Shown in pieces: positions 34,422-40,399 of a stretch of 64,000 nucleotides of DNA. Both the position numbers and the translations under genes were made by a program. The notes below the pieces were generated by a model. That model was not told the DNA's origin, searched no databases, and saw nothing but the letters and a program-made list of their open reading frames with translations. The DNA is from Kudoa neothunni (taxonomy: Eukaryota; Animalia; Cnidaria). The DNA lies in contig OZ199839.1 of the NCBI GenBank assembly GCA_964304625.1, positions 10,961,186 through 11,025,185 on the forward strand. The letters run 5' to 3'. Positions within the stretch are counted from its first letter, which is position 1. Every line of letters starts with the position of its first letter.

Positions 34422-36582
34422 TTAAAAATCTAATTCTAAAGGTTTAAGGTTTGGAGGTTTGAGTGTTGAATAATTTGATATGGGATACATTACAAGAATG
34501 TAATGATGATTGTTGAACCAGATTCTAGTGGTACCATGGAAAAAATCTCTAACGTCTAAGTTCCATAACTTAAATCGACTATATTTGATTTAAATGAAAA
34601 ACTCTTAAAAAATATATACTTTGTGATTCGGTCCCAGTTTTGTTTAATTGAAACTTCAGTATTGATGAACATAACCGTTGTTCGGTTAATTAATTCGTAA
34701 TAGCTAAAACCATTTCTGTTAAACTGGTTGGTGCAAACCGACCCGTTTAGATAGTTTGAATAACTCTTGTCAAAATCTTCAATGATGCTGGTATAATTAT
34801 TCGCAATCTTGCTCAATCTGAAAAAATATTTAAATATGTGTATACTTAAATTTACCTAATTAGGGATGTGAGAAATTCGTTGTAAGAATTGTCTTGAAGC
34901 CATGATGTATTGAAATGTTGCACGTAGTACGGATATTTTGGTCTGGGGGCGAAATGATGACGAAATAAGCTAGGACGCATAGTGTTGCCTCGCAACCCAG
35001 CATGAAAAGTTCTCGAGATATCTGGAGCAATGCAATCCCTGCCTTTTCTTCGTTTATTATTTCTCATCCAATAATCCCAGTCATAGTTGTGCGGGTTTTT
35101 CGACCAGCATGGTATAAGGTCTTTCTCGTAGATGCTTCTCAATAAAGCCCAACCTAATCCAGGCATAAAGTCGGTTCTAAAAATTCCAGTAGGATCGCCC
35201 AGAGTGTAGAGATAAGACTAAAATAATTAGCCTACAATTTTAAAAAAATTTTTATTATGTACTTGATCATTCCAAGCGGAGACACAATATAAACTTGGGT
35301 TGTGCCGAAGAAAGGGTATAGTTTCAGCCATAAAAAGCATAAAATCTGGAGCTACTTCTAGATCATCTTCCAAGATAATAATTTCACTGGCTTTTGGATA
35401 GCGGTTAAATGCCTTGATAAGCGACTCGCGATAATGCTACAAATTGGAGTTAAGAAAAATGAGCTAATGTTTATTCGATACATTGTTAACTGCACATATG
35501 CCAGTGCAAATATTCACATGGAAACTGTACTTTACATTGAACAATTTTACGACATCAATTGTTTCAGTATAGTTACCATCAATGAACACATGAACGTTAC
35601 CGGGATACACTCCTCTAATAGAAAGAAGAGATTGTAAACATAAGATAAGGTAGTATGGCCTTTTTGACGCCATTATTACAACTGGAGTGTTGATTAGGAT
35701 GTCATTAATATTTTTATTAACTTCTGAAGCGAACGGTTTATACGAGAAATCAATAGGAAGATGCTTATCACCTAACAATTGTTCAAATAAAAACCATGTA
35801 AGAGCATCAACTACACTCGCAGTATTGGGTGTATGAATCGTGTTTAGTGCAAAACTCATTTCTACGGTTGTAGGAAGGGGTGCTCGGCCAGGATGAGCAA
35901 TGTTTTGATCCTACTACTGGCGTCGTAGATTTTGGGCAGTCGAAGAAATATTCAACTTTTATGCAACCCATTCCACATATATTTTTTAATTTAAAATTAT
36001 TTCTATTTTTCTCAACCATAGACCTACTATCCACGTCACGCAAAAATATCCAACTTCCGGGTGGATGATTTTTATCAAGCTTACTGCCAAAGTATCGAAG
36101 GAGATTAACCAGTTTGTTTGAGAAATGATTGATTTGATAACTCTATATATAAATGAGTTGTTTCAATAGCGAAATATTACCATTGAAACTATCACTACTA
36201 TTCTGTTGGGAGGGAAACTACTCAATATATTGATCAGTTCTTCTTCATGTTCCCACCATTCAGCAATATTAAAATTTCTTTCGAATGTTTTTTTGTGGGT
36301 TAGTTTGTTTAGAGCGATCATAATAAGAAATTGATGTTCAAAAGTCAAATTTACTAAAGTTTTTGAGTTTAACGATACATTTAATCTATTTCGACAGTAT
36401 CTAACTTTTATAACCTATAAAGCTTTTAAGTCGTTTTAATGTTATATAAATACATTGTTGTGTTTCGGCGAACGTATGAGGGGTTTATTATAGGAATATT
36501 TGGTTATTGCTATGGCATTTGTTCTTTTTGTCATCACTAATAAAATTATTGCAAAGATTCCCACAAAAATAATAGGTTTCAT
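34422..36582 (-). CDS. POMGNT1: Protein O-linked-mannose beta-1,2-N-acetylglucosaminyltransferase 1 (GT13)
   Basis: Type II signal anchor MKPIIFVGIFAIILLV. Motifs PVVIMASKRPYYL, VFIDG, IIILEDDLEVAPDF, CVSAWND, MPGLGW, DWDYWMR..RKGRDCIAPDISRTFH and LWNLDVRDFFHG..KPP, plus the stem-domain CSSWP...RRNEFC typical of POMGNT1 rather than MGAT1. Confidence 0.9.
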
Positions 36583-37560
36583 TTAACTCCTTAATAAGAA
36601 AAACCGTTATTACATTCTAAAATATAATTTAACCTTTTTAGAACACAATGTGGAAGTTTCATCAAATTTAATTTGTTTATGCGGTGGTCTCAACTGAGCT
36701 AGATAGTTGAATAGTACCTGCTAGTGAATGAATCAACTCTAAATTAATCACACAATTTGTGATCTTCAATTAGCAGAGAGAAAATTAAAAAGATTTTAAA
36801 TGTTATCGTTCAAAAATAAGACCTTTTATGTATTTATTTTTGTTGATTCAATCGCTATCACCTAGAAACCATTCCACACAGAAAGTAGCAGAATATTAAT
36901 GTAACTTTTCGATAATTATCTCATCGAAATATACAACAATTATAATGGCATTAAACAAAAAATTATTTCCTCAACGATCACTTACAAAATGTTTGTTATA
37001 ATGTTAAGATTCGAGTACCACAAGTTAAAACAAGAACGACCAATAATTTCCAACAGCAACACCTCAATTAACCTTCTTGCGTGTTGGGAGTTAATTTGAC
37101 CCCAAAGGCAATAAATGTATAGCCGATTTGGAGGCGCTCGGAAGGTTCTCGCACATTATTTTCCCAACCCCACCAAAAGTCTGCACTACGTTTTGCGGAC
37201 TGTTTATGTATAAGCATTAAACAAACGATATCATTGGTGGTTATTTACGATTATATTTCTTTAGCGTAGATAAAACATTAAAAAATATTATATATTACAT
37301 CTTATACTGATAATATAGAGGAATTTAATGTTTGAAGATACTATTATTATTATTATTCTGATATAATGGATATTTTTAAATCTATGACAATAAATTTTCG
37401 ATATCCCAGCCTTATTATAAAAACTAATATACAATAATACAATTATTTTTAATTATTCAAATTTTCTAAAAAAATAGGTAAAAACACATTTGGTTATCTA
37501 TAATAGTCATAAGATTGGAAGTCAGCGCGTAAAAAACATCAAATTAATAACCTAACTAAT

Positions 37561-39205
37561 TTAGCAATATATCAAGTCGGGTTGGTTCAAGTAAAGCAAT
37601 AATAAAATTGCTATTATTGTTAAAACTGAAAATAATATTACACCAACATATTCCAACCAATCGAATCCTAAATAATGGTAGTAGCATTATTTCAGTTGTG
37701 AATTAACCCCAAACTATATTTTTTCTTGTTTTAATCGCTTCCTGTGTAAAGTAATGCTAAAGAATTGATCATAAACATTGTATAAATCAGGCATACAAGT
37801 TCATTCATTTTTGTGGGATTTCCGTTTGAAATATTTCGAATTGCGCTGCAATCACACACACTTCCCTCGTAATATGGGTAGTCCTCTTTAGTAAAAACAT
37901 TAATATTTATGAAATGAATCCAAAATTTTTACCTGAAACGCAGATTTTATAACACAAATTATGGCTAAACATGTAATTTAATTTTTAGACAAGCATAATG
38001 ATGTTTACAAAGTTAATGGTTGAGATTTTAGAGGACTGGTTTTAATATTTTCGCTGCATAACTTTCCAGTATAACCTTTTCTGCAATCACATATTATGTC
38101 ATCGCTTAAATTTTTCCTCTAAAAAATTCATTATACTTCAATAATAAGATTAAATATGATCAATTATTTGTATATAGTCATTTATACCTTCAGGATACCA
38201 TGATTTTGACATAGAGGATATTTTTCGTGGAGTGCTCCTAAAGTTATAGCAAATATATTTCACCAACGTAGATTACCATAATTTTCTTCACAATGAGGAG
38301 GTTTTTTGCCATTTTTACAGTATAGCTCTCCAGAGACTGGATCACAAAATTGCAAAGGTTCCGTTGCATTGCACTCAATACTACATCCAACTCCAAGTTT
38401 TGGCCAACAGAAGTAACTAAAAAATTAAAAAAAAGAATCCTACTGCGTATACATCGTTTTCTAATTTTTAAAATATTAAAAATACCTTATTGAAAAATTC
38501 ATAAGGCCGTGGCGCAGGATTCCCCGTAATCTAGGGAAATGTCGAACAACCATGGCCCTTCCATTGTAGCAAGGCAACTCCCATGCTTCAATTAACTGTG
38601 TACTTACACGCGCATAAATAATTATATTCATGCAAAGCTAAAAAATGAGTTCAAATTATTAAAGTAACACTAAAGTTTTAAATTTGTTAGCCATATAAAG
38701 TTTAAATGATAGTGAATACGAATTGAATCAATTCTTATAGAGGGATCCCATTATAAAATTTCATCTAATAATTATTGTTTTGTTTAAATAAAAAAAGTAA
38801 AATTAGCGATTAAATTGTATTAAATGAACAATAATTTTATAACGTATAAGCTAAGTTTTGTAAAATTTTTAAGATACTTGAATTGGAACTTCCATGCGAA
38901 TATTAATATCAAAATCTAATGGATCTAACACTAGCTTCTTCATGTTTTCATTTACTAATAATACGACAGATGTATTATTTATGTTATCTTGACCCACGAT
39001 ATTAATGAGTGATTCTCTTTCAACTCTAAACTCAACAAAATAGATTTCCTAAAATATAAATGCAAATTTTAGCGATTAAAATGATGTTTGTTTCACTAAG
39101 TATAAATACATTAGCGTCGGTAAATTCCCTTGGCGGTTTGTTTATTCTCAGACGACAATCATTTTTGTTCACAGTTAGTAAAATAAATAAAAATAATAAG
39201 CTCAT
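37561..39205 (-). CDS. Delta/Serrate/LAG-2 (DSL) domain type I membrane protein, Notch-ligand-like, about 10 short exons, absent from the ORF track
   Basis: Hand splicing at GT-AG gives: signal peptide MSLLFLFILLTV; an N-terminal region with LIEAW...NFSISYFC; a DSL exon (38416-38277) C-x7-C-x3-C-x8-C-x8-C-x8-C; an EGF CQNHG...CDCRKGYTGKLC; a TM segment YVGVILFSVLTIIAILLLLYL; and a short tail. One A must be removed near 38980. Confidence 0.8.
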
Positions 39206-40399
39206 AATTTCTAGTGATGTTTAATATTTCAGATTAGAGCCAGAATTATACTCAATCACTAAAAAGTTGGTTTCCTTTGTGGGGATAAATGAGCAAATCC
39301 TTAGTAGATTGTAGATATGAAATCCTTTTTCAGTTATAATTGCGTTAAATAGTATAATTTTTCTCGTACAATCTTACGATTGACTTTATCTTGATTAAAA
39401 TTGAGAGATTTATAAAACAAGTAGTCGATGTCTATAATTGGAGTTATCCATGAAATGTGGCTTTATTGTTTCCATTAAGAAATGAATAAAGCAAAAATTA
39501 TTTAATAAAAATGCAGTCAAAATTATTTAAAGTTTCGCACTAATACCTGGCATCATTTCGAATACCTGACATTGCAAACTTCATCATTGATAGGTTTATG
39601 TCATTATCACAACTTAACACGTTTTCTCTTTATTTTCGAAAAAACTATTTCCGATATACTTGAGGTAAGACTATATTTCATAAAAAATATAAAGGTTCAA
39701 CATATCATTTAACATCGAGCCATTTAACTTTGAATCTATGAAACAACATAGGATCAAGTAGGATTTGGAAAACTTGTAAAAGATGTGAGTCTATTTTTTG
39801 AAACAGCATCTTTTCTTCCGAAGCAAAAGTAATTCCTTGTTATAGATTTGGTACTTCTATTTAACAAGGCGCAAATAACACTAGCTTTATTTAATGTGTA
39901 TTATTTTTTCGTCAATCTCAAAATTTTGATGAATATCACTTAGGATGCTCCAGTTCAGAGTTTTTCGGTTTTGGGTGTACGAATCAAATATAGCAAATAA
40001 CAAATGAAATTCTCAAAATTAACCTAACATTATTTATTTTGGCAATTATGATAAAAACATTAATTTGAATTTATGTTCTCATTTTTTATTTGTTGATTTA
40101 ACAGGTAAATATCATTTAAATAAACTAATAAAATATCTGCTATTATTAATTCTCATTTTTACTTTACATAAATTAATACCTAAATAATTGTGATAACATG
40201 AACTTCTTAACTATGAATTTATAGTGAAAATATAAAAAATTACGTAAATAATTATTTCAAATGGAATAATTGTACATTTTTCAATTTCTAGGGATGAGGT
40301 CAAGATATTTTATTAATAACAAAATTATGTTAGAACTAAATATCTCTGTTTAATTTTTAAGTCGTTCCTTTCGTATAATTGTTATTCTTTTAGCATCGT

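Follow-up and report, generated by a model that had tools for sequence, protein, structure and literature searches.

A spliced ten-exon gene of Kudoa neothunni encodes a predicted DSL-ligand-like membrane protein with a lysine-free tail

Introduction

Is the Notch receptor of a myxozoan still under the control of a ligand and, if so, how much of that ligand is left? According to Lovy et al. 2025, myxozoans are devoid of Mind bomb, Neuralized, O-FUT, Fringe, MAML and Hes/Hey, and of 13 myxozoan taxa only two, Ceratonova shasta and Tetracapsuloides bryosalmonae, yielded a Delta-type ligand, Kudoa being unnamed in the main text (PMC12166595). The same survey leaves open whether the ligand was lost in the other myxozoans or is too diverged to be detected. 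An older genome paper reported expanded Delta/Serrate genes in Myxobolus honghuensis; as these were assigned by pathway annotation, we give them little weight (PMC8855578).

The question is raised anew by a locus of Kudoa neothunni. In a stretch of 64,000 nucleotides of contig OZ199839.1 (the window), an earlier note written from the DNA letters alone had proposed a hidden, stripped-down Notch-ligand-like gene on the minus strand. Here we ask whether this gene exists, how its product is built and whether that product could be the ligand of the Notch encoded in the same genome.

Results

Gene model and splice signals

No open reading frame in the region 37561-39205 exceeds 57 aa, so that all stay under the 60-aa threshold, in line with the statement that no entry of the ORF track falls here. 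On the minus strand, ten exons of 32-171 nt could be spliced with consistent phases from an ATG (39205) to a TAA (37561), yielding a joined frame of 996 nt (Table 1). The encoded protein thus comprises 331 aa, a correction to the roughly 310 aa given before. An in-frame stop is located six codons 5' of the ATG. All nine introns are bounded by GT..AG, eight of the nine acceptors read TTTAG, and the introns measure 39-69 nt with the single exception of one of 240 nt.

To identify the longest spliced ORF we used dynamic programming with GT[AT] donors, TTTAG/TAAAG acceptors and introns of 35-300 nt. Applied to the minus strand of 37400-39400, the search returned exactly the ten-exon model, so that the coherent minus-strand protein of about ten micro-exons described in the earlier note was recovered independently of it. 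The plus strand of the same interval gave 216 nt, and the longest frames in 200 dinucleotide shuffles averaged 228 nt (sd 83) and did not exceed 522 nt. Furthermore, the G+C content of the exons (0.34, with exon 3 the highest of all at 0.42) differs from that of the introns (0.21) in a window that is AT-rich overall (G+C about 30%), and among the codon positions the first is richest in G. TTTAG occurs 6.1 times per kb on the sense strand of the gene vs about two per kb across the window, a three-fold enrichment, and the model acceptors account for eight of the ten copies on the sense strand. A contig from a DNA run of independent format was identical to the window over 35317-40300, with zero differences. 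Since the unbiased search settled on this very model, with shuffled sequences falling far short of it, and since the G+C contrast and the TTTAG enrichment point the same way, we consider the model solid: a spliced ten-exon gene, with predicted expression, for a type I, cysteine-rich, EGF-containing membrane protein is well supported.

Two details of the splicing pattern deserve mention. When introns down to 20 nt were permitted, the sole change was the end of exon 4, which moved from 38277 to 38268 through a second in-frame donor 9 nt past the preferred one; its use would add three residues and reduce the intron to 30 nt. The other detail is the length of intron 2, in which the strict spliced-ORF search gave no frame-consistent additional exon. 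A longer chain of 15 exons, obtained by the same search with loose acceptors, was rejected as overfitting. The downstream neighbour is a multi-exon gene of the GNT-I glycosyltransferase family, recognised by one exon; a word-index protein search with its 131-aa exon retrieved no relative.

Table 1 Features of the ligand-like gene and its surroundings (positions in the window)
Feature	Position	Strand	Description
Exon 1	39110-39205	-	ATG; hydrophobic N-terminus resembling a signal peptide (about 39158-39205); ends in phase 0
Exon 2	38878-39048	-	N-terminal domain, first half; alternating hydrophobic, beta-like pattern; one NxS/T sequon
Intron 2	38638-38877	-	240 nt, 4-6 times the length of the other eight introns; unused TTTAG 32 nt ahead of the real acceptor
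Exon 3	38486-38637	-	N-terminal domain, second half; LIEAW at 38581-38595; C-terminal alternating strand MNFSI abuts the Cys module
Exon 4	38277-38416	-	DSL-like module with a six-Cys framework at 38290-38409 (spacing 7-3-8-8-8)
Alternative donor of exon 4	38268-38277	-	GTTGGT
Exon 5	38188-38237	-	Degenerate EGF, N-terminal half; one Cys; C1 and C3 positions without Cys
Exon 6	38009-38118	-	EGF C-terminal half, CxCxxGYxGxxC at 38056-38091, CDCRKGYTGKLC; then linker
Exon 7	37933-37964	-	Second four-Cys module opens with C-x3-C
Exon 8	37797-37885	-	CxC of the second module; membrane-proximal stalk begins
Exon 9	37708-37756	-	Membrane-proximal stalk
Exon 10	37561-37667	-	TM helix 37588-37650; tail NQPDLIYC 37564-37587; stop codon 37561-37563
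GNT-I family gene	34556-35859	-	Downstream neighbour; PF03071, E 3e-14, one exon

Architecture of the predicted protein

Hydropathy analysis indicated a type I topology, that is, a predicted signal peptide and one TM helix. The Kyte-Doolittle 11-residue peak of the N-terminus reached 2.89 at residues 2-12, while the 19-residue peak of exon 10, which holds the 21-residue TM helix, reached 2.88. All five NxS/T sequons are placed within the predicted ectodomain. The signal peptide, LIEAW in exon 3 (E3), the NFSI-S-YFC stretch across E3 and E4, the TM helix and the tail NQPDLIYC, as listed in the earlier note, could all be read from the sequence.

The N-terminal domain (E2 and E3) consists of about 125 residues with an alternating, beta-like pattern and three cysteines only. 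LIEAW lies 35 residues ahead of the six-cysteine module, and the strand M-N-F-S-I-S-Y-F spans the E3/E4 junction directly before the first cysteine of E4. In Delta/Jagged ligands such as DLL4, JAG1 and fly Delta, L-[IV]-[IV]-E-A-W forms a strand that is among the best conserved in the N-terminal C2/MNNL domain, and an alternating hydrophobic strand runs directly into the first DSL cysteine. LIEAW and the alternating strand of the Kudoa gene may be signatures of such an N-domain, the spacer being shorter here. A text search of the literature for the N-domain motif returned English words only.

Three motifs were traced through the six-frame translation of the window (128,000 codons). [LI][IV]EAW, a relaxed DSL cysteine spacing and CxCxxG[FYW]xGxxC occurred once each; all three single occurrences sit in the ligand-like gene and follow one another as N-domain, DSL and EGF, as would be expected of a ligand. 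For [LI][IV]EAW, the chance expectation is about 3e-5 per 125 aa.

The canonical cysteine spacing of the DSL domain is 8-3-11-7-8. Compared with this, E4 retains two loops of canonical length (C-x3-C and the final C-x8-C), while the other three are off by 1-3 residues. The long gap between C4 and C5 is unlike EGF, in which C4-x-C5 is near-invariant. As described before, KLG stands in the place of YYG and GKKP in that of GWxG; the loop after C3 reads NATEPLQF, and the basic and aromatic residues known from the Notch-binding face are not kept. From the "six-cysteine DSL domain" of the earlier note, the six cysteines stand, while the assignment to the DSL family is not supported by a profile match.

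A similar distinction applies to the "one EGF" that had been assigned downstream: its C-terminal half in E6 matches the consensus exactly, and its N-terminal half is degenerate, giving four cysteines in all. The second four-cysteine module was found as well, in E7 and E8, as a remnant of the form C-x3-C ... CxC. Both EGF modules thus possess four cysteines instead of six. C1 and C3 of an EGF normally pair with each other, and the pattern of absences appears consistent with the loss of whole disulfide pairs.

The chain ends with a tail of eight residues that carries a terminal cysteine, no lysine and no basic residues at all, and hence lacks the positive charges that usually follow a stop-transfer helix. 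The description of a lysine-free tail was thus accurate. No GT is found between the TM helix and the stop codon, so the tail is not extendable by splicing from there.

Family searches and fold predictions

All family searches, scans and fold predictions were run on single exons and not on the joined protein. The exon-by-exon check against Pfam DSL, MNNL and EGF that the earlier note had suggested gave a divided answer: hmmscan at E <= 10 returned neither DSL (PF01414) nor MNNL (PF07657), while E6 produced EGF-type matches with E values of 0.008-0.044, all of them under the gathering scores and including EGF_DL_JAG at 0.044. A six-frame search of the whole genome with the Pfam DSL profile yielded zero candidates; the same method found the LNR of Notch at 48.6 bits, which served as a positive control. 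The corresponding MNNL search was likewise empty (zero candidates), with no positive control and with its power lowered by exon splitting. Paralogues of E2, E3 and E4 were not found in the 40-Mb genome of this myxozoan, in which the ligand-like gene is single copy. The idea that further DSL genes might exist as paralogues was thus not borne out by these searches.

Comparison of E4 with the PDB by phmmer gave a sole match, a weak resemblance over 23 residues to a netrin-4 EGF of the laminin type (E 0.52); E3 matched nothing and E2 one irrelevant entry. Laminin-type EGF (LE) modules have an eight-cysteine framework with CxC pairs. This framework is not realised in E4, which has six cysteines and no CxC, and Pfam EGF_laminin matches E6 only (E 0.038). 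A word-index protein search with E4 found nothing, and HMMER of E4 against 1.84 billion protein representatives gave six matches, among them no DSL protein and no orthologue. These six (E 7e-6 to 8e-4) were dismissed as spurious, being long repetitive proteins without DSL or EGF-type Pfam families; four carry unrelated Pfam families and two carry none. Searches of the ESM Atlas with E4 and E3 returned scores of 0.78-0.83, under the useful range, and scans of JGI metagenomes with E2 and E3 returned nothing. AlphaFold modelled E4 alone with four short strands, at low confidence (pLDDT 58), and Foldseek retrieved no match to this fold from the PDB.

By statistical test, the assignment of the protein to the DSL family is not supported. 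Because the DSL profile gave no match and the conserved residues of the family are not kept, it should not be filed as a DSL member; by every formal test it is an orphan with an EGF remnant.

The Notch pathway in this genome

Notch itself, one of the partners for which the genome was to be searched, is present, and the gene that supplied the LNR control is the only one. No more than about two degenerate EGF-like modules are encoded by its N-terminal open exon, so that it can be called a miniature Notch. Inspection of this gene by eye revealed that the frame seems to resume across about 24 nt (minus strand, L006 6843-6866, G000:C1) that start with GT and end with TTAG. Located after the first EGF-bearing exon, this stretch may be a mini-intron, with a length well under the 39-69 nt seen in the ligand-like gene. 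A marginal LNR-like match was also noticed away from the Notch gene, at G000:C3:8541946-8542011 (21.6 bits, E 0.017, 27-aa open frame).

Mind bomb, which the earlier note had named as another gene to look for, was undetectable: neither MIB_HERC2 nor Neuralized was found by a genome profile search without a positive control, in agreement with the published survey (PMC12166595). The lysine-free tail of eight residues fits this situation, since a tail lysine would have no user where these ligases are undetectable. A complex prediction of E4 with the N-terminal EGF exon of Notch scored 0.00, which counts neither for nor against binding.

Discussion

Evaluation of the ligand hypothesis

Taking these results together, we infer that the locus may encode a highly diverged, minimal Delta-type (DSL) Notch ligand of Kudoa, and we assign this reading a probability of about 0.5. 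It ranks first on account of the three once-only motifs in ligand order, the rarity of LIEAW, the strands resembling those of known ligands and the two canonical loops of E4; the pathway context, with a miniature Notch present and Mind bomb and Neuralized undetectable, fits as well. It is weakened by the three loops of deviating length, the disappearance of YYG and GWxG and the lost binding-face residues, by the fact that no exon gave a profile, sequence or fold match to DSL or MNNL, by the laminin-type EGF as the best weak match of E4 together with the lack of an orthologue in a second species, and by the tail without the usual positive charges. Judged by its sequence, the product merits the description of a DSL-ligand-like orphan and would be the only candidate ligand in this genome.

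As an alternative, the gene may encode a lineage-specific surface protein of Kudoa, assembled from EGF-superfamily modules for adhesion, cell-in-cell or host contact, with no tie to Notch and with a convergent or coincidental likeness to DSL. All DSL and MNNL family tests failed, the weak matches were to generic EGF or laminin-EGF only, and residues of the Notch-binding face were not kept. We regard this explanation as a serious one, if somewhat doubtful. It leaves to coincidence that LIEAW, whose chance expectation is very low, precedes by 35 residues a six-cysteine module with C-x3-C and C-x8-C, and that an EGF follows directly, which is the order of a DSL ligand. Moreover, the gene is single copy and does not stem from an expanded surface family.

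It is improbable that the gene is unexpressed, either as a recently dead pseudogene or because the exon chain is partly wrong (another 5' or 3' end, or too many or too few micro-exons). In three raw-read RNA runs labelled as the same species, not one read fell on a stretch of 5.8 kb; this stretch included the neighbouring GNT-I gene, which likewise had none, and the organism was not detectably in the runs, which hence are no test of expression. The alternative donor of E4, the outlying 240-nt intron and the absence of the gene from 1.84 billion predicted proteins could also be cited in favour of a defective model. Against this, an intact 996-nt frame over nine introns is far above chance, the splice signals are strong and the coding composition contrasts with that of the introns, and the strict search offered no frame-consistent extra exon. 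Absence from the databases is expected for an unannotated genome, and the GNT-I neighbour was not found there either.

Very improbable, finally, is a membrane-tethered precursor of the growth-factor type (EGF-receptor-ligand-like) or a lipid-anchored protein, with an active EGF C-terminal half and the C-terminal hydrophobic stretch as a cleaved or acylated anchor: CxCxxGYxGxxC near the membrane and the very short tail with its terminal cysteine and no basic residues would suit it, but the EGF is without two of its six cysteines, the large N-domain and the six-cysteine module would be unexplained, and eight polar residues after the hydrophobic stretch are unusual for a GPI signal, for which reason a GPI anchor was judged less likely.

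Proposed mode of action

If the protein is a Notch ligand, a signal peptide would be followed by an all-beta N-domain that keeps the LIEAW strand of C2/MNNL, by the six-cysteine DSL-like module, by two EGF remnants that have each lost one disulfide pair, and by the stalk, the TM helix and the lysine-free tail of eight residues. The N-domain and the DSL-like module would touch the miniature Notch at its one or two remaining EGF-like modules. Myxozoans grow cell-within-cell; the receptor could be presented by a neighbouring or an enclosed cell, or in cis. With no lysine in the tail and with Mind bomb and Neuralized undetectable in the genome, ubiquitin-driven endocytosis of the ligand would be unusable for any activation. 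Activation might instead proceed as with the ligands of C. elegans, the ectodomain being what matters. Alternatively, the protein may only damp or tether Notch in the manner of Dll3. Such a non-activating or cis-acting ligand, as the earlier note had considered, would have a real precedent in Dll3 (PMC2171428). Nothing supports the host-directed role that had been considered there as well.

Going further, one may imagine a co-evolved miniature pair, consisting of a tail-less DSL ligand with two EGFs and a Notch that has kept one or two EGF modules, that works without Mind bomb, Neuralized, O-fucosylation and Fringe. No smaller ligand-receptor pair of the pathway would then be known, and a myxosporean Notch would still be under the control of a ligand and not ligand-free; we put this forward tentatively and consider it rather unlikely.

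In any case, the Kudoa gene is a concrete, clonable ligand candidate that makes the open question of the 2025 survey testable (PMC12166595). Should the ligand hypothesis hold, the protein would be a new, extremely reduced variant, a plausible proposal with evidence at the level of motifs and architecture only. The protein would then give a lower bound for the requirements of a DSL ligand and would exemplify the activation or damping of Notch in an animal without ubiquitin-driven ligand endocytosis. Should the protein not be a ligand, the case for a ligand-free Notch in Kudoa would be the stronger.

Comparison with known Notch ligands

Among the closest known systems are the ligands of C. shasta and T. 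bryosalmonae, which belong to the same phylum, are Delta-like without a VWC domain and are fast-evolving (PMC12166595). BLAST queries from fly and sea anemone sufficed to identify them, which implies that they are far less diverged than the Kudoa protein, with which they are compared here by description (PMC12166595).

With canonical Delta/Jagged ligands (DLL4, JAG1), the Kudoa protein shares the order of signal peptide, N-domain, six-cysteine module, EGF and TM helix. In contrast to its two EGF remnants, however, canonical ligands possess 6-16 EGF repeats; they display YYG, GWxG and a cysteine spacing of 8-3-11-7-8, whereas the Kudoa module has a spacing of 7-3-8-8-8 and neither of the two motifs. 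Their lysine-rich tails are used by Mind bomb/Neuralized, whereas the Kudoa tail is lysine-free.

The DSL ligands of C. elegans are small. LAG-2, APX-1, DSL-1 and their relatives resemble the Kudoa protein, with a low number of EGF repeats and without a DOS motif (PMC2504490). Some of these ligands are secreted, so that their signalling is independent of a long cytoplasmic tail (PMC2504490, with reference to Chen and Greenwald 2004). Unlike the Kudoa module, the DSL domain of the nematode ligands is recognisable by profile; in the Kudoa protein, moreover, both EGFs have four cysteines and the tail has eight residues.

Mammalian Dll3, like the Kudoa protein, combines a degenerate DSL domain with the absence of intracellular lysines (PMC2171428). 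Rather than activating Notch in trans, it binds the receptor in cis and dampens the signal (PMC2171428). Unlike the Kudoa protein, Dll3 has six EGF repeats, its N-terminal domain is recognisable and its tail is of normal length, and it coexists with activating ligands, whereas the search of the Kudoa genome gave no second ligand candidate. As the nematode ligands and Dll3 demonstrate, a cytoplasmic lysine is not universal among Notch ligands.
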